A DNA stretch of 64,000 nucleotides, taken from contig CAJFCJ010000005.1 of NCBI GenBank assembly GCA_904063045.1, forward strand, positions 2,598,165-2,662,164. Reading direction: 5' to 3'. This DNA is from Dimorphilus gyrociliatus. Lineage: Eukaryota > Animalia > Annelida. The translations under genes and the position numbers were made by a program. The notes under the pieces are model-generated. The model searched no databases. It was not told the origin of the DNA and saw only the letters and a list, made by a program, of their open reading frames with translations. Positions 25,510-43,491 of this stretch are shown here, one piece after another. Position 1 is the stretch's first letter. Every line of letters begins with the position of its first letter.

Positions 25510-28500
25510 ATGGGTAATAAGAAGAGTTGTTGTTTTGTACCAACTGACGGAGCTATCGATCAGAAGAAAAAAGTGGAGGAAAAATATAAAACCAATCATA
25601 AAGAAGCTAGATATAACTTGGAACCTCCTCTAATACTGACAACCTCTGCTTCAAATGTTCAACATATCAGCGAAAGAGAACCTGAGGATTGTCAAGATCC
25701 GTCAAATGACCCTGTCACTAAAACTCTATTTGCTGTTAAAGGCGAAAGAGATCCTGCTGGGAAAAATCGTAAGTTCCATTGAAGATCTTAGATATATATC
25801 ATGTATTAGTGAAATATATAATATTCACATATAGTGTATACTATATATAGATATATATATAATGAGAGAAGGAGAGAAGAGAGGATAATAGTAATATGTT
25901 TATATCAGTAATTAGGACATTTTCACTCAATGAAAAATACGCTTGACTATTTAATTTTTCTATAGCAGCATTTAGTTAAAATATTACTGTCAATCGTATC
26001 TTGTAGAGCTCATTTCTTGACATCATAAAGTACGTAATTACGTAGATTTTTAAAAAAAATATATATTCCCTATTAATTCTGTTTTTTTTTACTTTCTATC
26101 CTTCCCTTTTACTTTGTATTCTTTCTTTCTTCTTTCTCTCTCCGTCCCTCTCGCTCCCTCTCCCTCTCTTGGTATAATACTTACTCTTATCTTATTTCTC
26201 CTCTTTTCTTTCCCTCTTCTAATTATAGCTAAACATACTTTTTAAGCAAGATGCTCTATGGGGCAGCTTAGACCTTCTTTATTTAAGTATAACTGAAATA
26301 TACTTCTATTAACCTTGCAACTCAAATTAACTTTGTAAAATTGAGTGACAACAAGAAAGACTAGATATTTAGAGTAGCAACCTCTTTCCAAGACATTTAT
26401 AGAACATCTCTCTATTTTTGATTTCTGCATAATATGTAATCAATGAAATGTATAGGAGTAAAGAAAATCATAGGATCAATGAAAAAATATTGAATTTAAC
26501 AACTTTCTTGTTTATTTATACTCGAAAAAAAACAGATAGGAAAAATTCTTGTCGGAGAAAGAGTCAGTATGATAATCACGTCGTTATCCATCCACACTCG
26601 GGAAAATTAAGGAAAAAGTATAGTTCCTGTTCAACAATATATATCGACGATTCCACAGTCACTCAGCCAAATTTGAAAAATACAATTAAAGCAGTCGCAT
26701 TAGCCGTTTATTTACATATAAAGAATCGATCTAACGAAGACGATCACGATTTAGACTTGGACGATGAAATTGTTGAAATTTTTAATGAAAAAGTTCACCC
26801 ATTAACGGTAATAGAGATTGAAATAACGTTAAAACTTTATTTATATATGTAGTCTTCAATAATTCTTTCCAGAGGGATTCCTTGCCTACAGACTACTGTC
26901 GGAAAGATCCTGAACATAAAACAATATATCGTTTTATAAGAACATTGTTCAACGCCGCCCAGTTGACTGCAGAATGCGCTATAGTTACATTGGTAAGTAA
27001 CACAGTGTAACTTACGTAATAATATATTGATAAAAATCGTAATAAAAGCAGTATAAATCAACAAATTTTCTATTTGATAGACTTATTTTAACTATGTATT
27101 ATAATTAAGTTATATATACAAAAGCAATTTGATTATTACATTTCTTAGTTAATATGAGAAATTATATAAAGTATATGATATATAAGCTTTTAATTACTAT
27201 TTATGGTAATATGTAAATGTTATTCGCTTTGTTCTTTAGCTAGATACTATTATATAATTATGCATACAGATATATTAAATGTATTATTATATATATATAT
27301 ATTGCTGTAGGTTATATAAGAAATTACAGTGTAGGCGTATATTAAATTCTATACGATTTTGCTGAAAATATCTTTTAAACAAATGACAATTATTTCCATT
27401 ATGTACGTTATACGTAATATTACTTCGTAAGTAATATTTGAAGTGAATTGATTAGAAAGGTTAGATAAGAGATGGGGCTAACCGTTTTTATTCTTTCTTC
27501 TTTTAAATTAACTACTGTGTATAAAAAGTTTCGTAATCAAAATTTTATCGATAAAACTTTGTGATAAAGAAATATATATCTATGTAGGATTTATCATTTT
27601 ATGATATAGTTTATTATCTTTTATTTGCTCTATACTGTATTGTTTTGTAAGTAATACTGATAATAACTACTTAAATAAATCATTAACTTCTTCCTGATTT
27701 TCATCTCTGTTCCACAGGTTTATTTGGAAAGGTTATTAGCTTATGCCGAATTGGAATTGGGTCCTCTAACGTGGAAGAGAGCACTTTTGGGTGCAATAAC
27801 TTTAGCCTCAAAAGTTTGGGATGATCAGGCGGTTTGGAACATTGATTATTGTCAGATACTAAAAGATGTTTCTGTGGAAGATATGAATGAACTGGAAAGA
27901 CAATTCCTGGAATTGTTACAATTTAATATTAATGTTCCCGCAAGCGTATATGCTAAATATTATTTTGAATTGCGTGCTCTGGCGGATGAACACGATCTAA
28001 GCTTTCCTTTAGAATTACTCAGCAAAGAACGAGCTATAAAATTAGAGGTTAGTTTAACTATGGTTAACATATGCCATCATGTAGTGTCCTCATACATATT
28101 CATATTAATAGAATAAGTGTTAAGGATATCCTCTTTACTTTTAGAAAAATGCACGAGAAATTGATTGATACTTTGCGTCAATGTTCATTTTAATTAGTCG
28201 TTAAAACTTATCCCAAAAAAAAACATTAAAAAGAAATCTTCTAGTCAATGTTTTTTAATTACTTTAATTTTAAGCCAAGTGATAGGAACAAAGATACTTT
28301 CTTTTAGCATTTATATAGGAAAAATTGATTGAATAAATGGTTGTTTTATCTAGCCGTTGATTAGAATAATATTTTTTCATTATTGCTTTATTTTAAATTA
28401 TGCCCAAGCTGTGGGAAATTTGTTAAATTTTGTTAATGGCTAAAAGAAAACATAGTGAATCAACGCAATTGTACGCAATAATCTATTAAAGAAATTGTCT

Positions 28501-29154
28501 AAAAAGTGCTAACTATAACCAATGGAGATTATAGAGAAAATTGTCAAATCATTTATCACACCATTACAAAACGGGAGAAATTTTACAACAAGACTTAGCG
28601 AAGATTGCCCAGTCAATTAAAAGATTTTTCAACAGTAAGAGGATCAAACGCTCTCTGACGTTAAGTAAAAACTTTCCAATGTTTTTAGAGGAAATTTACC
28701 GGGAGTAGGTCAAAGACTTTATTAGTAATCGCTAAATTTCAACTAATACCATCTACAATTCTAGAAAAACACAGGATATAAACATTATTTACGATACCCT
28801 ACCCTGTATTTTCTATTAGTATACAAGCATATTTTTAGTATATATAGTATTATACTATACATACTGTATATGCGTATAGAAAATGATACAAATTTGTCTA
28901 CTAATGGTGTGTAATATGTTATAATTAGACTATAGATTCTATTGTTATATTATTTTACATTTTATACAAGTATTATTTAAATAATTAACTTTGTTATAAT
29001 AACAATTGTATATTTATAATAATAATTATATGTTATATTTTTCCAACAGGCTATGTCGAATAATTGCGAAGATAAATTGAAAGGCGGCTTAAAAAGATCT
29101 GTCTCAGTAGATGGTGCGATGAATAAAATCCATACTCGCGCCATTCTTTCATAA
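25510..29154 (+). CDS. CCNY: Cyclin Y, 5 coding exons
   Basis: MGNKKSCC (myristoylation/palmitoylation N-terminus); [22 protein letters not shown]; [18 protein letters not shown]; [13 protein letters not shown]; last exon from 29050 ends RAILS*. Confidence 0.95.
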
Positions 29155-29294
29155 TGTATAGTTTTTTTTCTTTATTTTCTTTTTATCTTTTTCCCAACTC
29201 GTTCATTTGGATTTTTGATTATTTTTTAAATAATTACTGTTTTTCTCCATTTTTTTTCATCTACACTTACACATGCACATAGTCTCTCCCTCTT

Positions 29295-29297
<3 letters not shown>

Positions 29298-29325
<28 letters not shown>
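29298..29325. repeat. (CT)n microsatellite in the CCNY 3' region
   Basis: Perfect CT dinucleotide run. Confidence 0.9.
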
Positions 29326-29331
<6 letters not shown>

Positions 29332-30386
29332 GTGTGATATATAAAGTATATCAGAGATTATGTATATCACTCTTACTTCTCTTCTCTATCAATTTTTTTT
29401 TATCCTATGTATCTTTCTATTTCTCAGTCTCCCACCCCCTCCCTACTTTTTTTTTTATTCCTACTAAATTATCTTTTTCTATCTCTCCTATTCTTATTTT
29501 CCTTCTCCCCTTCCCTCCCTCTCTCCCTCATTTTCTCTTTTTTCTATCCTTACCCTTCTAATACCTGTTCCTATTTATTAGATACGAATTGTATTTAATT
29601 AGAAGTATTTATCCTTCTATTATTTATAGATGTTTTTAAAAAATATCATTCCAATTAATGGATAAAGAGAGGTGTTTTTTTTACCAAAATAATAATTATA
29701 TTTAAAAAAAAATTGTTTTTACGAGAATACAAATAGATTTTTAGTAATAAAGTGTTTCTGTTAATGATAATTATTATATTGTTTATACTAGACGACATAC
29801 TTTTAAGTTATCCTATCTATCATCTACAGAAGGTGATGAACCGGATTAGATGTAAAGTAAGTATTATTTTAGGAGAAACAGAGGTTGGATATCGCCGTGG
29901 TTACCACTGAGAAATTAATTAAAATGTTACGCAATTTCTGCAACAACCCTTATGACTAATTGATTTTTAGTATAGTTTAGTTAAACTGATAAAGAAAATG
30001 GGGGTTTTTACGTTCAATCGATAGGATGGAACAACTGAAAGATTTGATCGACAATAAAATCAATTTAATTCTCTGATTTCTAATCTGAATTTTATTGAAA
30101 ATAAACAAAAACAAGGAAACAAAATATACACAAATAAATAAATAATTTATAATGAAAAGCAATAAAATAGAACGTGAAACACTTTTAAAAAGAGAACAAA
30201 AATAAAGCTAATTAGCTAAGAATATCTTCTATCTTCCTATCTCGAACACTATCAAAGCATGTCTGAAGGATCTCTTTTTTTTCTCCATCCTATAAAATTT
30301 CAAGGTGAATAAATAACAACAAACTATTTACGTTTAGTTTAAAAGTGCTTACAAACACATATACAGAAATAGAATGTCTAATCATT

Positions 30387-33300
30387 CTATTCTCTATCAC
30401 TTACCATAAGATAGGGATTCACTTTCAATTCCATTGCAAATCTCTTAACCCAAATCATTTTCCCTTTTTCGATTAATTGTATATGTGTCTCGAAAGATTT
30501 TTGCCTAATTTTCATGTAATGAGCAAAGCCAACGCAAATTAGGAAGAATGATGTAATAATTATGGGAATAAGAATAGCTCCGTTATAGATAGTCTTTTGG
30601 AAAAACGGTTTGGGTACCAATTTTATATTCTCCCATTGAGTTGTCCATATTCTCATTGTTTTTCTATCAACAAATTTACATTTCCATTCGCCTTCGTGTT
30701 TTCTTTTCATACCTTTAATCTGAATATGAATATAAACAAAAGTCATATCAGTATAAATTAATAATGTATCGGGATTATAAGGTTAGTAAAGAAGCGTGAA
30801 TGCCAAAGAACGAAGAACTCTTTTCTTGTGTCAACACAATACATTCTATTCTTTCGTTTCGTATTTCTAACTTCCTAGTAAAATATACCCCATTCGTAGG
30901 CCTCATTTAGACCTGGCGATCTCTCTCTCTCATTCATTTCTAGGTTTTTATTCATTCACACCAGCGTTAAAAGAAAAAAAATATAAAAAAAGATGGAAGA
31001 TTATGAAAGAAAAAATGATTTGAGTACTCTTAACGATATCAACTTATCAAGTATTACAACTATACTAAAAAGAAGATTTGAGAAAGATATATTTTGCGTA
31101 TGATATTAAATTAAATTAATTTATTTCCTATTAATTGATTGATTTTGTAGACATTTGCTGATAATGTTATGTTTTTTCTCGAACCTGAAAATCTACCGAA
31201 AAGTTTCCTTTCAGAGGTAAGACAGAAAAAGATAAATACTTAATGATTTCAAATATTTAACTTCCTTAATTGATTTTACTTAAAGTCTAGACGTATTTAT
31301 AAAGATATAGAAAATGTTCACAGCCACCGGACACATATATACAGTTTGGCTAAAATGGTTTTTGATGATTTTACCTTTCGTAAAGAGAATAAATTAATTG
31401 TATTACATGGAGATATTTTAAATAACGACAATAGATTTAACATAATAAATATGCTTACTTGCCAACTTTCGTTCTTACCACAAAAGAGTTTGGTTAAGGA
31501 AGAAAATATAACTTCGGTATTAATATTCGATCATTTATATTTTAAAAAAAAGGCCTATATCTTTCCAATGAATGTTAATAATCTTATAACTTTTAAATAG
31601 AGTATGAGAATACTGCAGGCATTTAGAGATTGTCAACAGTTTGATAATAGGATACAATCAAAATGTGTGAAGCTATTTAACCTTTATTATAACGATGACA
31701 ATTTTTTTACTGGCGGTAAGTGAATCAAGTTAAAAATATTATTAAAATATGCTTAATGTTTGATGTATGTTTAATAAAATTAAAGCAAATATTCAAGAGT
31801 TCTTTTCGGATTGTGATACAATAACAAACAGAGATATAGGTGAATATAACTTTCACATTCTCTATCAATTATACTATGGAGGAAATTTGGAGTGTCTTGA
31901 AAAAATCAAGTATCCTAAGCTGCTTAGCGTATTGACGAAAGACAATGAAAGAATTATGCCTGAGGATCCTAATTACCGTGAATCTTATATTAATATTAAA
32001 AAAGACCTAAAAACACTATCATTCTCCGACAATGTTTGTTGTTTGTCAATGAATTAAGTTGTTTATTATTCATTTATTTATTTATTTATATTAGAATATA
32101 AAATATATGGAAAATTGTTTGGCAGCGGTTCTTCTTCTTGGTGAACTTCGAATTTCAAATAAAAATTCAAACTTGCAAGTTATTGGGCCTGTTGAGGACG
32201 GTAACAAAGAATTTTCTATAATCAGTTAACCGTACATTGTAACCTATGTTTGTAAACAGCTGCTAAATTACTTGATATGTCAAGTGAGTCCTTCATTGAA
32301 TTTATTTCGTATGAAATATTTGATAGGGAAGAGAAAGTCTTAAGATCGAGCTATAATGCTACAAGCTTTTGTTTAAAGTTGGCAAGGACCCTATACAAAC
32401 AACTATCCAAATGGGTAGTAAACAAGATCAATGATCATTTAAAGCAACACTTAAGGTTTGTCTTCTCCTTCTTTTCAATAGAAATGTTAATATATTTAAT
32501 TACTTTCGTCCTAGTTCTGTGAATCATTCTTTGGATAACTATAGAAAAGTTTCTATCATGGATTCACCTCCTCTTTTTCAAGATTGCCATTCGACGTCCC
32601 TTTGGAAATTTTTATCGAATGCCAGAGTAGAAAATATGAACTACATATATAATAAACATGTTTTCAAGGATCCACAAGATAGCTTTAAAGCAAAATTTCC
32701 TTGGACAGATATTGTATCGCATTATGAAAATGATACCTTTGATCTTTTATTCAATGTGAGAGAATGATTAAATTACCTTTATTTTATTTTATAAACCTCT
32801 GAAGTTTATTCCATTAGAAAAATAATGGACTATTAAAAAGACTTCGGGACATTTCCAATCCAGAATCTAGCAGCTCATCCGATTTTAAAACTGAATTGAG
32901 AAACGTTAAAAATAAACAGATAATATTACGAAATAACACGCAATTCGGAATTAAACATTTCTTAAATGATGAAGTAAGGATAAAACGTTTCTTTCCTCTT
33001 TTCCTTATCGTATCCTAGCTAGTAAAATTTTTGTTTTATTTTGTTTCAAGGCAAGTTACGATTGTAAAAACTTTATTGAACTAAATAAGGACTACGTTCT
33101 TCCTAACGAGGTATTTTCCGATTTTATTGGACTATGTAACACATCTGAAATAGGTAGAATGTGTGAAGTATTCAAAAAATCAAATACAAGCTTTCAAAAG
33201 TCAAAGGTTTTGTTATCTGCATCTGATCTAAGAACTCAAAAATTGGAGGTAAACTTAACAATACATTTAAATGTAATTTATTAATTGAAAGCTAAAATTG

Positions 33301-36300
33301 GATACTCGACTAGGATGCTTTAAAAGAAATCTTACCGGAATTCGAAGCGAGTGAAGTGTATTATCTATGGTAAAGTTTCTTATCTATTTAAACTTAGTTA
33401 ATCTATATATTTAATATGTATTTTTTAATATTTATAGCTGCGTTAATCATGCATCTACGAATGAAGAGAAAAGTCTAGAGGAAAAATTAAAAAGTTTTTC
33501 TATTGAACAATTAACAATGCTAAAGAAAAAAGGTTTTAGAACCGTCTTTTACGACACTGAATTACCTATGACGTAATTAAAATTTTACTTTAAAGTATTT
33601 AAAAACACTCTATCTATTCCTCTTTTTTTCTTCTTCTTCAATAAATCAACAAAATAGATTCAACTTTCTACCGCGAGACAAAGAGATAGAAGGTATACGA
33701 AAGTGTTTGGAGGAACATAAAGATTCTTATAAAGAAGTGGGAACAGCAATTTACCTTAAAACTATGGCTTTAAGGATATTGAGAACTCATAGGAACAGAA
33801 TTAAAAATGAAACATTAAGAGGAACTACCGGAATACCTAATCTACATGAAGAGATAGAGGAGAATGAAGAAATTTCTGATAATTATTCGTACGTTTCATT
33901 TTCATCCATTAATGAAGCTAAGCTAGTCTAAGTAAGTTTTATGCTGTTTTCTTACAAGAACAGATGGGATCGTCCCAAAATACTTCCAGCTGAAACACAC
34001 TCGTCTATTAGCACAAATAGTTGCTGTTTAAAATTCTGCCGAGTTCTGGTATACTTTTTAACATTCATTTTAGTTCTTGGACTTTCCATTCTAAGTCAAG
34101 GCAGCTTCATTATGCTTCTGGGAACGCAAAGAAAATATATGAATGACGTAAGTATTGCATAACTTTATAAAAACTAGAGAAGAAGAGAGTAATTAGAAAA
34201 TTTTATCAATTAGAAGTCTAAAGATGATCTAAGCAATACAATTTATGGACAGCTTGTAATTATAACATTACTTCCAGAAGTTTTACAATTACTTTTAGAA
34301 ACATTCCGATTCTTTATGAATAAAATTAAGCTACCGGATATAGTAACTATAGTGGTAATTAATTCATAATTTATAATAAATATTTATCAATTTTAATAAT
34401 ATAAAATCAATATATCTACTCAAAGGCAGTCATTCCAGAAGCAGCTTATGCGTTTGGAGTATCCATATTAGTTTTTAAAGTTTTACCAACTTGTGGATCA
34501 TTTCTTGCCTTCTTTATAATTCATGGAATAACAATAACACCGTCTATTATGAAACTACTGGAATATACTACTTTCTCTAAAAAGACTATAAAAACACATT
34601 GCATAAAATTTATAGTAGACATTTGCAATTTTGCATCACAAGTGATCGGTTTAATTGTTTTAACGATTGCTGTAGTGAGTTCATTCGCAGGGATAAAATC
34701 CAGCCAAGAATCACAATACGTAGCAGCTCTTGCGATTATAATAGTTTCATTAAAGTATTGGGAAAACTTTGTTGATTCTAAAATCTTAAACATAGATTTT
34801 AAACAATTCAAGACAAATATTCAAGATCACAAACCAATCCTAAATTTTATTTCACTTCCAATAAAAATTGGAATTATAGTTGGAATGGCGTAAGTTTTGA
34901 AATAGATACGTAAAGCTGAACGAATTGAAATATAATTAAACAATGTTCGTCTAGATACACGTTCAACAAGGATATTGATTGGAAAGGATCACTTTCGGAT
35001 AGAGAGAGTCAGAAAGATTCTTCAGCATCTTTCACCTCTGAAAGAGTTCTATTAATAACCAATTGCATCTCATCATTCTGCTTGTTTCATATTTGTCATA
35101 TCGCTTGCCAATTAAGAATGCAAATTTTTAGTTTGGCTACGCCTTTGATTGTTTTCTCTGGTCCTGTATTAGCTGGATTGATCGCTCTGCAATGCGAAGG
35201 TTTTATTGATCCAATTAAAACAAAGACAGTTGGCTTGGAATTTAGTTTTTATGCTGATTACAAGAATGGTAATAAGAGCAGTATTCTATTTTTTGGCATA
35301 TTCTGGCTCATAGGGATTGTAATAACAACTCGACATATTTGGACGGAACCACGTGACAAAGAATCAAAAATTGAAACACTCTTTACTAATACAAACTTCA
35401 CTACCTTCGCTCCTGTTTGCAATATTTTATTTAGCAGAAAGCAATACGCTGATGATTATCAAGTACACGAAGATTATCAGTTTGGTGCTTATCAACATCT
35501 CCCAGAAGTGAATGTGAACGAAAACATTCAAAATTCACCAGAAGTGATTGCTTGCGCAACTATGTGGCACGAAACTAAGGACGAGATGAAACAATTGATA
35601 AAATCTATTGTGATCTTGAGCAGAGACTGTTATAGGAAAAGAACGGTATCACAAAAAGCAAATTATCTTAAAAGTGAATACTTCAACTTTAGCGGTAAGA
35701 TATTTCCCGTTAGCTTTAACATCTCAAACTATCAAGCATATCTCATTTCTTTATTATAGCCCACATCTTCTTTGATGATTGCATGACGTTAAAAGAGGAC
35801 AAGAAAAGAAAAGGGAATTTCTTCGTTGTCAATGAATATGTACGAAGATTACAAGAAGTTATTAGCGAGACGCTTTCACTCTTCGAAACTAATAAAACTG
35901 ATGAAGTTATAAATCAGAGTCCTAGAAAATATCGTACGCCCTACGGAGGAAGATTGGTTTGGGTGTTACCAGGCAATATTGAACTAGTAGTACATTTGAA
36001 AGATAAGCATAAAATAAGGCATAAAAAGAGATGGTCTCAATGCATGTACATGTATTACTTAATAATGTTCAAGTTACTTGAAAATGGGAAGGCTCTACAA
36101 GATAGTTCTGACGCGTGGAAAAAAATTGTTTATACAGGATCGGAATATATTAAAAGTTTGAATCAAGCATCGCTAAAGAAGCTGGCCAACACCTATATTC
36201 TAGCCTTGGATGGTGATGTAACTTTCAAGCCAAAAGCTATAGAATATTTGGTCGAATGTATGAAACAAAATATACAAACAGGAGCAGTTTGCGGTCGAAT

Positions 36301-39300
36301 ACACCCTACTGGTAGAGGACCAATGGTATGGTATCAAGCGTTTGAATATGCTGTTGGCCATTGGTTTCAGAAAGCAGCTGAACATATTTTCGGTAGTGTA
36401 CTTTGTTCTCCTGGTTGTTTCTCTTTGTTTAGAGTAGCCGCCCTACTGGACAATAACGTTATGAAAACCTATTTAAGTATTGCAACTGAACCAGAACACT
36501 TTATTCAGTACGATATGGGAGAAGATCGGTGGCTATGTACTCTACTCATACAGCAAGGTCATCGAGTTGACTATATTGCCGCATCAGACGCCTTAACAGT
36601 TGCACCCGAGAGTTTTAGCGAATTCTTCAAACAAAGAAAACGTTGGATTCCGTCGACTTTAGCAAATATTGTAGATTTATTATCGAGCCATAGAAATGTT
36701 AAAAATCCTAATATCAGTAAATTCTTCATATGGTATCAGTTCTTTCTATTAGTTTCAACCATTCTTGGCCCATCAACTATTATCATCGCTATAGCGTCAG
36801 CTTTAGATACGATGTTCCAAGATTGGGATTTATGGATTTGCTTCCTTCTTTCCTTGGCCCCTTGTATAGTCTACATAGTAATTTGTTTGACTACAAAGTT
36901 GAAAACACAAATTAAAGTGGCCCAATTTCTATCTACAGTCTATTCATGCGTAATGTTAATTGTGCTAGTCTCGATTATAAAATCATTCGTAGATGATAAC
37001 ATTCTCAATCCATCGCTTCTGTTCATAGTTATTGTTGCTGCAGTATTTGTGTTTGGTGGTCTTCTACATCCTGAGGAAGCATCCTGTCTCATTTATGGCA
37101 TCCTTTACTTCCTATTTATTCCAGCTGGCTATCTCTTTCTAAATATTTTTTCCATATGCAATCTTCACGATATTAATTGGGGTACAAGAGAAACTCCAAA
37201 GGTAAAAACTAAAGCCGAATTAGAGAGAGAGAGGAAACTAGCTGAAGATAGAGAAAAGAACAAAAAAAGATCGTGGTATAGTGGTCTATTAGAGAGATTA
37301 ATTAGAGATATTTCAGCAATATTTGCTCCTATATTAAACAATAGAAAGAAATCGATTGAAGAAAGCAATCTTATCTTCATGTTGAAAATCTTGGGAAAAG
37401 ATATCAAGAAATTACGACAAGTAATAGTTAATATATCCAATAAACAGTTGGAGCATGAAAATGTTGAGGATACCGATGATGAAATGATGGAGAATATTGA
37501 CAATAGTTTAAAGAATTTGAAAGATGAGAAAGATGAGGAAGAAAAGAATCAAGAAAATAAAGTAGAAGAAATTACATGTGAACCAGAGGATATCGAAGAA
37601 CTAAGAATCCAATTTGAAAATTGGAATACTGCATCTTGGATTAACGATACTGAATTGAATAGCTTTCTAACCGATGAACTTGACAAGGATGAGATTACTT
37701 TTTGGAAACAACTCATTAAAAAACATCTACAACCATTCGAAAAGAACGAAAGAAAAGAAAAACAAAAGGGAGCAGCTCTGATAGAATTACGTAATTCAAT
37801 GTGCTTTATGTACTGGTTTAGCAATGCACTTTGGATATTATTGAACTATTTATTAATGAGCGATCAATCGTTATTTATAAGTATGTTTGGGTCTCGAGTA
37901 CACGGCTTAGGTGTAGTATTTATGGTACTATTTACAGTGCTTCTATTCTTTCAAACTATGGGATTGATCCTTCATCAATGGGAAACTTTCGTAAAAGTAA
38001 TTTCGAACATACAACTAAGTCGTAAAAAATTATCTCAAGGTGAAATGAGGCTAAATCAACTATACCATGAGTTTTATGGAAAAAGTCAAAATCAAACTAA
38101 CAATATGAAATATCCACCCCAATATGACAAATATCGAAATATTAATGAACAAAATAATAAGAGATTCCAAGGAAACAGACCGCAAAACATTTACCGCGAA
38201 GCGCCAGTTTAACAAGAATGAGAACAACAACACTTGTTTGTACAAACTATTTATATGTTAATCTATGAATACTCACTGACACTTTATTCATATTTCTGAA
38301 ACTTTTATCTTTTATATACAACCATTTATCTTGTACCTTTTTATACCAACGAATAGTCCAATTGCTGAACAGTATTATCAGACGGTCGGCGTTACAAGAA
38401 AATGTTCTTGGATTGTATAGAGTTTCCTCTATTGGAATTGGTCTTTGCCTATTAATAACTGATAATGCCCAAAAATCTATTATTCGATATAATCTTCTTC
38501 CGGTTGATTTACTTCTCCAATATTCAGCTTCGCATGTATAAACACCAGAATTGAATGGGTATAATTTCGTCAAAAATATTGAATCTCCCTCAAGAGACGT
38601 ATAGGCTGATAAACCCAACGAATGACCATTAAATGTCCAATAAATTTTTACCGATGGTATCTCATTTCGGAACATCTTTGTAGCTAAAATATTACAATTT
38701 AATAGATGTCTCTTTAAGACTATCTTTTCAATATTATTGAATGTCTGATTAATATTCTTCTGAATTTCATTCTCAAGTGCGTCGCTTAATTTTGGCATTA
38801 ATGCTTTTTCACAATCAACATTCTCATTGCAAGCTATTCCTGTAACGAAAGCCGACCCTGAACAGACAAAACCACCGAACATTGGAGGTGGATTTGAACA
38901 CCATCTTCTCTTTGACAATACACCACCAGGCGAACAAGTCGCATTACATTCGAGAAGAGTCCATTCTGTCCAACCACCGTTTATAGGACATAATAAGTTT
39001 GCCTTACACCACCGAACCTCATTCGATCTACCAATACATTCTTTCCCACCAGCTATTGGAGGTGGATTATTACAATATCTAATCCTACTTCGTCGCCCCT
39101 TTTAATTAATACAAACTGAAGATAAAACTAATAGAAAAACAATATTTATAAATTGTACAAACCCAACCACATGTGACGTCACAGTCCCTACTCCACATAC
39201 TCCATGAACCCCATTTACCATTGACTTTATTTAAATTGCATCTATCTATTTGATTTTTGATGTGTTTTAAGTTTTTTCCAATCATTAACTTATAACAATT

Positions 39301-40745
39301 CACCTTCTCCACATCCATAATTGGAAATGTTTGCTCAACTTTAAGTAATTGTTTTACAGTATCATTCCATAATAATTTTATTGTTTTCTTAAGTTTTGGC
39401 AAACAATATCTACCAAAACCTATACATTTTCTAATTCTAACACTTTGAATGGATTGCCAAGATATTATAGTTTTACAATTGTCGTTTATATTTTTAGGAC
39501 AAGCTGTCCACGCCGTCCAAACTGTCCATTCCTTTCGGCATCTGGGTAAGTTTTGTAGTTTACCCTCGACGTTTACCTCTTGCATACAACTTCTAAATTG
39601 AGCCATTAGTCTATCCGTAAACTATTATGTATTATTAAAATTAATAGAAATAATATGCAAGTAAAAGAAGGTTTAAAATATATTTACTGGATCAGAGCTA
39701 ATCCATCGTTCTTGCCTTAATCTTGTATCCTCTTTTAGAACTCCTTCACATGTATATTTATCCTTTGGTTCGTTTCTAATGCACATTCGCTTCCTATAAG
39801 CCATAACCTTTTTCGAATAGCATTCAGTTGGACAATGCCACTTTGAACCAGACTCAAATTTAAGCCACGCACCCCAATGTATATTTAATTGCGGTTCTCT
39901 TTTAGCCGTACGACTATTATTGCACAAGCAATTCGTTATCTAAGACGTTATTTAGAAAAATATTTAATAAAACATTTAATTGATATATTCACCTTTAAAA
40001 CTGACCTTTACCTTACCAATTTTACCAGGACATTTGAAGCGAGAATTTCTACTTTTCTTAGTCTTTTTACAAAATCTAATATATTTTGATTTATTAATTT
40101 TATAGCAAGATTCACGACATTCTGACAAACTTTTCCATTTCGTCCATTCACCTGTAAAATCACCATCCTCAGTACAATCAAATCCAGAGGTTTCGCAATC
40201 AATAAATTTTGTTTGACTTTCCCCATCTTTATCAAATCCGCAAGCAATTGGATGCTCCGCTCTACAATCGATTAATTCATCCATAAACACTTTACAACTA
40301 TTACATATTCTAGAGAAAGGCTGACGACCTAACTAAATTTTAGGTCAAAAAAAAAAACAAACAAAGATAAAGAGTTTTTAATTAAAAAAAATTAAAGAGT
40401 CCAACTTTTTCCCAACACTTTCTTCTACAAACACCGGAAGCTTCCCAATTTGACCATGTATTATTTCTTAAGATGTAATCATCTATTTATTCATTAAGAC
40501 ATCGGATTATAATTGCTTATCATTACTTTTGAAGAATGAATAATAAAAAATCTACCTTTTTCATTAAAGTCAACTGTTTCAATATTTTTTAATAATTTTT
40601 GATTTTCACTACTAATTAATTCAATGTTAATTGGTTTTTCATTATCCAATAAATTGAGGGTATTACTAAAATCTAGACGATTGCAATTAATTAATAATTC
40701 ATTAATTAATATATTTATTAAAAATTCATTAAATATATTAAACAT
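30387..40745 (-). CDS. Type I membrane protein: signal, multiple TSP1 repeats, two Ig domains, TM, short tail; last exon 30387..30719 lies beyond a 7.6-kb intron
   Basis: TSP1 motifs TWSNW, WTKWKS, WGAW, WTVWTAWT, WGSWSMWS, GGWTEWT and CNNPPPIAGGKECIG. Ig1 WTFNG...NSGVYTC. Ig2 FSC...WYKK is completed only by the distant exon (VS|IKGMKRKHEGEWKC), which is followed by a TM segment. Donor GTGAGT at 38276, acceptor TTCAG at 30720, phase 0/0. Confidence 0.75.
30993..38212 (+). CDS. Myosin-motor-domain chitin synthase, multi-exon, with a degenerate myosin head
   Basis: Myosin-like N-terminus (NDLSTLND...LKRRF, EYNFHILYQLYYG, FGIKHF), then TM segments and GT2 chitin synthase motifs ACATMWHE, LALDGD, CSPGCFSLFR, GEDRW, QRKRW and WGTRE. 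Confidence 0.92.
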
Positions 40746-41311
40746 ATCTCTATTTAAAATAAACAAAATAAACAAATATAATAATCGTCATTTATATATG
40801 TTAATTTTTATTGGTAGTTAATTCATACTTATAGGCCTACTATTTTTTTTAATTATTAAATGAAAAAGAGTTTAATTAGTAGGGGAGGCCTAATAAAAAA
40901 TATTTTAAGATATCGAGTATTTGAATGATCGCCTAGATATAATCTATTTTTATTAACTACTTATTATAAAGATAAGACAATTACTAATCAGAGTTCGTAT
41001 CTTGTCTTAGGAGTTTCTCGATTTGCTTTGTAGCGATAACATTTTCAAAATACAGTCTTTATATTCATTTTTGTTATCTGAGACTCAAAGAGCTGATACG
41101 TAATATCAGCTAAATCTAAAGATCATTTATATCAATCTGAAGCAATTTCTCCTGGGGATTCGTATAATTAAAAAAAGAATCATTTTAATTAAATGAAAGA
41201 GTAAAATTTCGTTTAAATAGACTTAAAAGCATTTTATTAATAGATCTTTTATCTTAACTTATTAAGTGTAAATATAGCAAACGCTTAGTAATCTTAACTC
41301 TACCGTAAAAG

Positions 41312-43491
41312 ATGCTTTTTGACGATATTCTTGGAGAAATTGGCGAATTTGGGCGTTATCAAATAGTTTCTTATGTTGTCCTTGGAATGTTAGCAATACC
41401 TGCTGGATGGCATAATTTAGGTATTACCTTCTATGGTAATAAATTACATCATCATTGGTGTAGAGTTAAAGAACTCGATGAATTTAATAATTCAATAAAA
41501 TGGAATGTTGCAATTCCAAGAGATGATAGCGACGATAAATTTGAATGGAATAAATGTAGAATGTTTAATTTGAATTATTCAAGTTATAGACGTGAAGATT
41601 TTCTAAACTGGAATAGATCTATTAGCGAAAATGCAGGGACAATTGAATGTAATAATGGCTGGGATTTTGTTACTGGCTTTAGAACCGTTATGCAAGATGT
41701 ATTTTTTTATTTTCTTTTCTTTTTATTATATCTGTTATTATTCTATTATTCATTGTTATCAAAACAGTAAAACTATTCAATATCTCCATTTTAATCTTCC
41801 TTTTTATTTCTATTTATCAGTTCAATTTGGTTTGTGGAAGGTCTGCTTTAGTTTCTTTAATTCAAAGTATTTATTTTACTGGTTTCCTTCTGGGTACTAT
41901 TGTTTGGGGTCAATTCTCCGATTCGTAAGATATAATAATACTGATAACAATATTTATTAAACTTTTTGCATTAACTACTCTCTTAGTCGTGGTCGGTTAA
42001 AAACTGTTTTGATAACTGTAGTAGTTCTTATTGTATCTTCTATTGCTGCCGCGTTTGTACCCTCAAATAATGTAGGATATGGTCTCTTTGTTACTTTGAG
42101 ATTCTTTGTTGGCTTTGGAGTGGGTGGTTCATATACTACTGCCTTTGTAATGGGTAAATAATTGAATAGAAAATAACCTTTACTATAATAATAAATCTTC
42201 TTAGCAATGGAGATTATAGGACCAAAATTTAGAGCTAAAGCTGGAATATTTGTTCAAGTGTGGTTTGCTCTTGGCTTCATGACTTTACCTTATATGGCTA
42301 AAGCCATGCCTAATTATAGAACATTGCAGTTAGTTACAGGCGCTATACCAGCTGTGTTTTTACTATGTCCTTTGTAAGTTAAAACTGACATAAGCCTATT
42401 AAGTAAAGAGAAACTAATTAATCCTATTTTTAAAGGGTAATAGACGAAAGTGCTAGGTGGTTAGTAGCTGAGAATCAAGATGAAAAGGCAGCTAAAATCC
42501 TTGAAAAGATTGCAAGATGGAATAATACAACATTACCCGCCAATTTGAATTTAGAGGAAAATCGTAAAAATATTGTATCGGATCGGAAATATACAGTTGC
42601 TGATCTAATAAAAACTCCAAACTTACGTAAAATTACCTTAAATATGTGGGTTAATTGGTTAGTAGTTAGTCTTGTTTATTATGGACTTTCGTTAGAAGCA
42701 GGAAACATGGGAAATTTAGATTTTTACCTATCGAATTTTATCTCTGGTGCCGTTGAAATTCCTGCATGTCTCTTCACTATTCTTATATTAGATAGAATAG
42801 GAAGAAAGATACCAGTTTTAGGTACAACCCTATTTGGAGGAGCTAGCTGTCTGATTGCAATAGCCTTTATGAAAAATACGAATTGTAATTTAGAATAGAG
42901 TGGATTGTTTTATTGTTTTAATATATTTCTAATTTTTAGCCGTAGCATTGACAGTTTGTTCTGTTATTGGTAAATTCTTTGTCAGCATGGCCTTTGCTGT
43001 TATTTACGTTTGGGCTGCAGAAGTATTCCCAACAGTTGTAAGAAATGTTGGTGTTGGTGGTTCATCAATGGCGGCTAGAGTAGGTTCTCTCGCTGCTCCT
43101 CAAATAGGACGTTTGGTAAAATTTAACAACTATAAATAATTAATAGTATTATCATCTTATTTATTTTCTATATAATTTCTTAGAAAGAAACGTGGAGACC
43201 TTTACCATTCGTTATTTTTGGAGGTACTTCTCTAATTTCGTGTGTTTGTTCGTTTTTCATACCGGAAACCCTTAACAAACACCTTCCAGAAACCATTGAA
43301 GATGGTGAACTATTTGGAACGTAAGTAGTCAACACTAGATTTATTGTAGATTAGAAAATGTACATTCAAAATCAAATTTTGGTTTAAAATACAGATCGAA
43401 AGCTAAAGTAAAGCCAATAGAAGATGAAGTTTACACTATTTCCAAGTCAGATTTAGGACAAGAAAACCTAGATGATAAAAAAAAGGAATAA
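41312..43491 (+). CDS. SLC22 organic cation transporter-like MFS protein, multi-exon
   Basis: MLFDDILGEIGEFGRYQ start, large Cys-containing first loop, DRIGRK, EVFPTVVRNVGVG, PETLNKHLPETIEDGE. Confidence 0.92.

Follow-up and report, generated by a model that had tools for sequence, protein, structure and literature searches.

Nesting on opposite strands is the commonest form of gene overlap in animals, and nearly 10% of Drosophila genes are part of nested structures (PMC3814207, PMC5174743). Examples include 2mit, carried on the opposite strand within a timeless2 intron (PMC3786989), and conserved nested pairs are also known, such as the vertebrate LRRTM genes in introns of alpha-catenin genes (PMC3933685). 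The usual route to nesting is the landing of a gene copy in an intron (PMC5174743), and transcriptional interference between nested genes has already been studied (PMC3192792, PMC8467205). Here we describe a 64,000-nucleotide (nt) stretch of the genome of the annelid Dimorphilus gyrociliatus (hereafter the window; positions 2598165-2662164 of contig 5 in the 77.9-Mb assembly), in which a complete chitin synthase (CS) gene very probably lies antisense within one intron of a spliced gene for a single-pass membrane protein with thrombospondin type-1 (TSP1)-like and Ig-like domains (the host gene). This is an ordinary nested-gene arrangement, though large for a compact genome in which the median intron measures 66 bp (PMC7854359). 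The proteins of the window were 100% identical to the public D. gyrociliatus models DgyrCDS3701 and DgyrCDS3702.

Evidence from RNA came from a single public run (X1, 2017; Logan assembled contigs, unstranded, presumably from whole animals), the sole public run containing exon 6 of the host gene, and its contigs were aligned over positions 35300-41299 of the window. The contigs are cDNA-like: across both genes they omit five short GT..AG introns, those of the host-gene contigs being 64-73 nt long with CT..AC ends on the plus strand, and the one omitted by the CS contig being 65 nt long with GT..AG ends on that strand. The minus-strand open frame ...WYKKVQDKWLYIKDKSFRNMNKVS (...FRNMNKVS) finishes at 38277, in the middle of an Ig-like domain, and is followed by a GTGAGT donor; a reading through this donor meets an in-frame stop after nine codons, the stop codon ending at 38247. 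An acceptor, ...TTCATATTCAG, finishes at 30720 in phase 0 with that donor, and the exon behind it opens at 30719 with ATT AAA GGT ATG (IKGMKRKHEGEWKC). A first-pass annotation of the window, made from the letters alone, had called both splice sites, their in-phase continuation and an intron about 100 times the typical size, and had named junction reads or RT-PCR joining 38277 to 30719 among its checks. One X1 contig carries this join. It has a 255-letter loose end before 38277, the 30-letter consensus of which (GCCTTCGTGTTTTCTTTTCATACCTTTAAT) matches positions 30690-30719 exactly and occurs once in the window (0 expected from shuffles), and the loose letters extend to about 30465. Splicing connects the host exon that ends at 38277 with position 30719, in agreement to the base with the predicted junction; the intron so defined, intron 6, interrupts the second Ig-like domain in phase 0, is removed by ordinary GT-AG splicing and is about 114 times the typical size, the six other host introns measuring 64-115 nt.

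The outcome that the first-pass annotation had itself named as fatal to its proposal, namely host transcripts ending at the 38247 stop, with the exon at 30387 part of a separate transcript, is contradicted by this contig. In such an arrangement a TSP1/Ig gene would encode a secreted protein, the open reading frame (ORF) at 30387-30746 would be a small membrane-protein gene of its own, and the CS gene would lie between the two. The public annotation agrees with that, as it has no long intron and gives the host a 509-residue model without a membrane helix, and so does RNA that runs colinear across 38276/38277 in a contig reaching 38306. We nevertheless regard two separate genes as highly improbable: the join of 38277 to 30719 in the X1 contig respects GT..AG borders exactly, no start of the small ORF is conserved and its conservation with a related species sets in exactly at the acceptor, the Ig pattern Cys..Trp..HEGEWKC is completed only across the junction, and the annotated host model has frame errors elsewhere together with an internal splice that is absent from X1.

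The arrangement was also found in a close relative (Logan assemblies of SRR23372228 and SRR23372229; 76-83% protein identity), the contigs of which are genomic because their ORFs read into introns. A search of protein representatives returned a 297-residue ORF of this relative that is 76% identical to exon 6. In one of its contigs (L004) exon 6 ends with AAACCATTG followed by a GTAAGT donor, and a 760-residue CS ORF is found on the other strand 105 nt on; in another contig of the same sample (L005) a polypyrimidine tract and AAAAG stand directly before the transmembrane exon (ATTAAAGG), with 5' exons of CS upstream on the other strand. Donor and acceptor of the long intron are thus both kept in the relative. 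The end of the former and the start of the latter have 22 letters in common at a TA repeat, which would give an intron of about 7.9 kb, and the upstream neighbour gene is equally placed in the relative (L003). These adjacencies show that the nesting, to judge from the contigs, is older than the split of D. gyrociliatus and its relative, because the neighbours of CS match on both flanks; conservation, which the first-pass annotation had put forward as a check, is thus borne out in independent DNA contigs of one close relative. Two Capitella CS loci had no host-like exons and no myosin head within 10 kb; they are not orthologues of the nested gene and are therefore uninformative on nesting.

The coding region of the nested CS gene runs from an ATG at 30993 to a stop codon at 38210-38212 (7.2 kb, many exons) and is wholly contained in 30720-38276, with 273 nt of intron to spare at its 5' end and 64 nt at its 3' end, as had been noticed from the sequence at the outset. 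Pfam Chitin_synth_2 (PF03142; GT2) matches with 113.9 bits, the cut-off being 27, and the catalytic motifs ALDGD, GEDRW and QRKRW are readable in the 809-residue CS ORF. The exons upstream show faint similarity to a myosin head (E 0.008-0.02 exon by exon), far under the Pfam cut-off. The X1 contig of CS, 6,199 nt long, is colinear with the window over 35300-35693 and 35759-38306, with a GT..AG joint between these blocks, and extends for a further 3,257 nt upstream of 35300, which fits a transcript starting near 30993. The two genes have separate spliced X1 contigs with introns on opposite strands, so both are expressed, as distinct transcription units. Intron 6 very probably owes its length to the complete, separately transcribed gene that it houses on the opposite strand.

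The host gene occupies the minus strand from about 40745 to 30212 and comprises eight exons encoding about 839 residues (Table 1). Its model, built from X1 joints and from conservation in the close relative, is 2,520 nt long, has a single stop, at its end, and shows GT..AG borders at all seven introns. The frame of exon 1 is kept in the relative (MLMNALLILINSNFIYC..NLDF..DNEKPI; tblastx) and its phase-1 join to exon 2 stays open, while the 5' boundary of exon 2 was set from an AG at 40484-40483 and conservation. An X1 joint at 40332/40406 omits a 73-nt piece bounded on the minus strand by GT..AG; in exon 3, which follows, the conserved frame of the relative is unbroken, whereas DgyrCDS3702 runs there in another frame. 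A loose end behind 39621 reads TGGATCAGAGC, identical to 39688-39698, and defines another host intron, and the joint at 39097/39162 can also be cut one place to the right, giving an intron 39162..39099. X1 contigs are colinear with exon 6 over 38277-38777 and 38784-39010.

At the 3' end our model departs from the first-pass annotation, which had taken the end of the ORF at 30387 as the end of the exon. An ORF of the relative (P0152, 83% identical) follows exon 7 as far as PYLM and diverges thereafter; at 30405 both species have ATG followed by GTAAG (with a GTAAGT donor in D. gyrociliatus), then a poorly conserved stretch, and after an AG a conserved block that reads DGEKKEILQTCFDSVRDRKIEDILS plus stop here and DKEKKEILITCFESVRDKKIEDILC plus stop in the relative, with the stop at the same position in both. 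Because conservation stops at PYLM and the following GTAAG and resumes at 30289, an intron of 115 nt and, at 30289-30212, a final coding exon are to be expected, and the transmembrane exon most likely ends at the 30405 donor and joins that last exon. A minus-strand AATAAA is present at 30096, beyond exon 8.

The host product is predicted to be a single-pass membrane protein with a probable signal peptide, about five TSP1-like repeats, two Ig-like domains, one helix and a cytoplasmic tail of some 60 residues. Pfam TSP_1 (PF00090) matches exon 6 in two stretches with 26.6 bits, above its cut-off of 21.6; the other TSP1-like repeats, which introns split, are recognizable only by their WxxW..C..C patterns. 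The first Ig-like domain shows similarity to those of DCC (E 0.0014) and contactin-2, and the second is known from its pattern alone (FSC, IRWYKK, HEGEWKC), which is completed only across the junction. The helix, the one strongly hydrophobic segment, reads AILIPIIITSFFLICVGFAHY and has basic residues behind it (MKIRQK), with a Kyte-Doolittle maximum of 2.62 at model residues 755-777. An Ig domain completed across the intron and followed by a membrane helix and tail had been claimed from the start; the Ig assignment is plausible though weak in formal tests, the Ig_3 score of the first domain staying under the Pfam cut-off. As a separate observation, phmmer matched the transmembrane exon (30405-30719) to the region of the first membrane helix of human SIDT1 (..VGFVHYLRFQRKSID; E about 0.002), a match that probably reflects composition only. 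Paralogues of the Ig and transmembrane exons were searched for in this genome and none was found; therefore there is no ancestral short-intron copy to compare.

Several points weigh against the reading of a spliced host gene with a nested CS gene. For the protein, Pfam Ig_3 gives the first Ig-like domain (..VYTCEA..) 18-19 bits (E 0.002-0.004), short of its cut-off of 30, AlphaFold2 on exon 6, run from a two-row alignment, returned a mean predicted local distance difference test score (pLDDT) of 34 and is unusable, and the signal peptide is weak, the N-terminus being weakly hydrophobic and exon 1 itself inferred. For the gene model, exons 1 and 8 are placed by conservation alone. Outside the close relative, word searches with the transmembrane exon and with DgyrCDS3702 returned no host orthologue (the gene itself, the relative and one TSP1 protein were the matches), and a HMMER search of the protein representatives gave mainly multi-TSP1 proteins, which match the TSP1 part alone. 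Nothing but the 22-letter TA-repeat overlap connects the two contigs of the relative, and a length filter excluded most full-length CS proteins of the myosin type from the quick tree considered below. Finally, the X1 contigs carry no information on strand, transcript ends or isoform proportions, and the 38277/30719 junction is carried by one contig from one run. That last point would suit an artefact, either a chimera in the assembly graph or a misplacement of CS between the two host halves by the genome assembly, and X1 does hold a spurious join of such a kind: a loose end at 37554, rejected as an alignment artefact, comes from a transcript of another genome contig (G000:C12:1487911-1487940) that shares only 19 letters (AAAATAAAGTAGAAGAAAT) with the CS exon. 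The host junction, however, coincides to the letter with a consensus donor and acceptor, preserves the frame and makes a domain complete, the independent DNA contigs of the other species show the adjacency at both ends of CS, and the X1 contig of CS runs colinear into host exon 6, which leaves an artefact as an extremely remote prospect.

The close fit of guest and intron raises the question of overlap between the two transcripts. Since the X1 contig of CS is colinear to 38306, some RNA is unspliced across 38276/38277; we read the end of this contig, 30 letters past the junction, as a fork in the assembly graph, assuming 31-letter words. No AATAAA or ATTAAA was found on the plus strand from the CS stop to 38628. 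The 3' untranslated region (UTR) of CS probably enters host exon 6, and unspliced host RNA is an equal alternative because the X1 contigs are unstranded. If host RNA were the source, both forms of the host product might be made, the membrane form and, from a share of transcripts that retain or end in the intron (at the 38247 stop), a secreted form with an incomplete second Ig domain, and antisense transcription of CS might set their ratio. The in-frame stop just nine codons into the intron is consistent with this, as is the adaptation of D. gyrociliatus splicing to short introns, with retention varying with intron size (PMC7854359), and in other animals nested genes can lead to retained introns and cryptic polyadenylation (PMC3192792). 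The colinear RNA may, however, be merely the CS 3' UTR, the read-through tail VSIHRLTYK plus stop is not kept in the relative, which reads VSIISNNLSTNMK, and word depth, estimated by bin subtraction, is about 7-8 for the junction contig and 8.06 for the exon 6 contig, a rough and poor measure that suggests the long splice as the main fate of exon 6. Production of both forms is unlikely.

With its coding 3' end 64 nt from the host donor and its start codon 273 nt from the acceptor, CS would probably have transcripts and a promoter that overlap host exons, and transcriptional interference or antisense pairing between CS and the host might be possible. The first-pass annotation had gone further and took this geometry to imply mutual exclusion or tight co-regulation. 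Geometry alone does not imply either, and the RNAs of both genes occur in the single run X1. A more far-reaching version would be a conserved sense-antisense unit, in which the 3' end of CS lies over exon 6 and its promoter abuts the transmembrane exon, so that CS transcription decides between a membrane-anchored host protein (through the 7.6-kb splice) and a secreted, truncated one. We consider such a unit improbable; if it were true, cells would have their chitin deposition tied to a matrix or adhesion receptor that they also make.

The origin of the nested copy can be approached through its relatives. Four CS loci are present in the genome of D. gyrociliatus. The close relative has an un-nested CS gene with a clear Pfam myosin head (L015:3882-10396), and its orthologue in D. 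gyrociliatus is found on contig 14 (L016; G000:C14:693207-695318; 68% identity). In a quick tree the nested pair stands beside the un-nested gene of the relative, with a Shimodaira-Hasegawa-like approximate likelihood ratio test (SH-aLRT) value of 98, on a long stem. Over the same exon the two species share only 56% identity in the nested copy, which, with its long branch, therefore evolves faster. Because the myosin-type CS group has at least one un-nested member in both species, the nested CS is most likely a gene copy that came to lie in an already existing intron in the middle of the Ig domain, which matches the usual route to nesting.

The public gene models miss much of this structure. 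DgyrCDS3702 (CAD5114652.1, 509 residues) starts inside exon 3, is in a wrong frame in part of that exon, and ends ...AEYWRSKDQFQ by way of an internal splice which is not seen in X1; it therefore contains neither the second Ig-like domain nor the membrane helix and tail. DgyrCDS3701 (1,277 residues) is the CS gene and is 100% identical from 34112 onward, where the model starts. It omits about 3 kb of upstream exons (30993-34112, plus strand, with the faint myosin-head similarity), which the 6,199-nt X1 contig appears to cover. Two public models are corrected in this way, a 509-residue fragment becoming a membrane protein of about 839 residues and the CS model gaining about 3 kb of upstream exons. 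For gene prediction in a compact genome the rule would be that an intron about 100 times the usual length flags a guest gene, and that predictors cut the host short.

Table 1. Features of the host gene and of the nested chitin synthase gene (window coordinates)
Feature	Coordinates	Strand	Description
Host exon 1	40556..40745	-	Inferred; from ATG to donor (AAAG followed by GTAGAT); N-terminus MFNIFNEFLINILINELLINC, probable signal peptide
Host exon 2	40406..40482	-	Start of first TSP1-like repeat (TWSNWEASGVCRRKCWEK); 3' end from X1 joint, 5' end inferred
Host exon 3	40006..40332	-	Rest of TSP1-like repeat 1 and repeat 2; X1 joints 40332/40406 and 39939/40006
Host exon 4	39688..39939	-	Trp/Cys-rich TSP1-like repeat (WGAWLKFESGSKWHCPTEC); X1 joint 39939/40006 and loose end
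Host exon 5	39163..39621	-	TSP1-like repeat (WTVWTAWTACP), spacer, start of next repeat (WGSWSMWSRDCDVTCGW); X1 loose end and joint
Host exon 6	38277..39098	-	274 codons; closes one TSP1 repeat and adds a whole further one, then Ig-like domain 1 and the first two thirds of Ig-like domain 2
Host intron 6	30720..38276	-	7,557 nt, GTGAGT...TTCAG, phase 0; X1 junction; holds the whole CS coding region
Host exon 7	30405..30719	-	105 codons; end of Ig-like domain 2 (IKGMKRKHEGEWKC), stalk, helix AILIPIIITSFFLICVGFAHY, start of tail; 5' end from X1, 3' end inferred
Host intron 7	30290..30404	-	Inferred; 115 nt, GTAAGT..TATAG; poorly conserved between two conserved blocks
Host exon 8	30212..30289	-	Inferred, coding part; 25 codons, DGEKKEILQTCFDSVRDRKIEDILS plus stop
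CS coding region	30993..38212	+	Divergent N-terminal myosin-like part; last exon 35759-38212, followed by 3' UTR
Colinear RNA past CS stop	38213..38306	+	Crosses the 64-nt gap and runs 30 nt into host exon 6; CS 3' UTR or unspliced host RNA

The surroundings of the pair were also inspected. A plus-strand gene starting at 41312 (window 41100-41770) stands head-to-head with the host, with about 570 nt between the two start codons; its X1 depth is about 260 and by eye it is transporter-like (MLFDDILGEIGEFGRYQIV..). In the gene beyond this upstream neighbour, the relative (L003:5-1798) and the window (45611-43810) have 82% DNA identity, compared with 70% for the host gene and about 71% for CS. On the other side, between the 3' end of the host and a plus-strand cyclin-like gene (27724-28116), positions 28200-30200 form about 2 kb of AT-rich, low-complexity sequence with GA/TC-type simple repeats reading (RE)n and no convincing ORF, an unusually roomy interval for this genome.

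In its parts and in its layout, the locus can be compared with three kinds of known systems. UNC5 has the domain order Ig-Ig-TSP1-TSP1-transmembrane-ZU5-death domain. Like UNC5, the host protein would combine extracellular TSP1 repeats and Ig-like domains in a single-pass membrane protein; in contrast to UNC5, its TSP1 repeats precede the Ig domains, which in this reversed order lie beside the membrane, the tail of about 60 residues is without ZU5 or death domain, and an orthologue was detected in the close relative only. Lophotrochozoan (mollusc) chitin synthases carry an N-terminal myosin motor domain. The nested gene resembles this type in having a CS catalytic core and, ahead of it in the same transcript contig, exons faintly similar to a myosin head, and the related species carries a CS relative with a clear myosin head; it differs in that its myosin-like part scores far under the Pfam cut-off and is left out of the public model.

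As to nesting itself, the pair resembles other animal nested pairs in that a complete opposite-strand gene sits in one intron, splicing of the host bridges that gene, different species share the pair and the family of the nested gene also has un-nested members. The published typical case is a short, young duplicate in an already long intron (PMC5174743), whereas the CS guest measures 7.2 kb, has many exons and fills 96% of its intron in a genome with a median intron of 66 bp, so that the guest alone seems to account for the length of the intron. The gaps of 64 and 273 nt to the host exons also set it apart from typical nested pairs; they are so short that UTRs or the promoter probably overlap host exons. 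By itself the CS/host pair leaves existing knowledge unchanged, but, as a conserved pair with almost no spacer, it would suit tests of transcriptional interference between nested genes outside flies and mammals. It stands out for a large guest that fits its intron closely, for being conserved in a relative, and for the annotation errors that have resulted from it.

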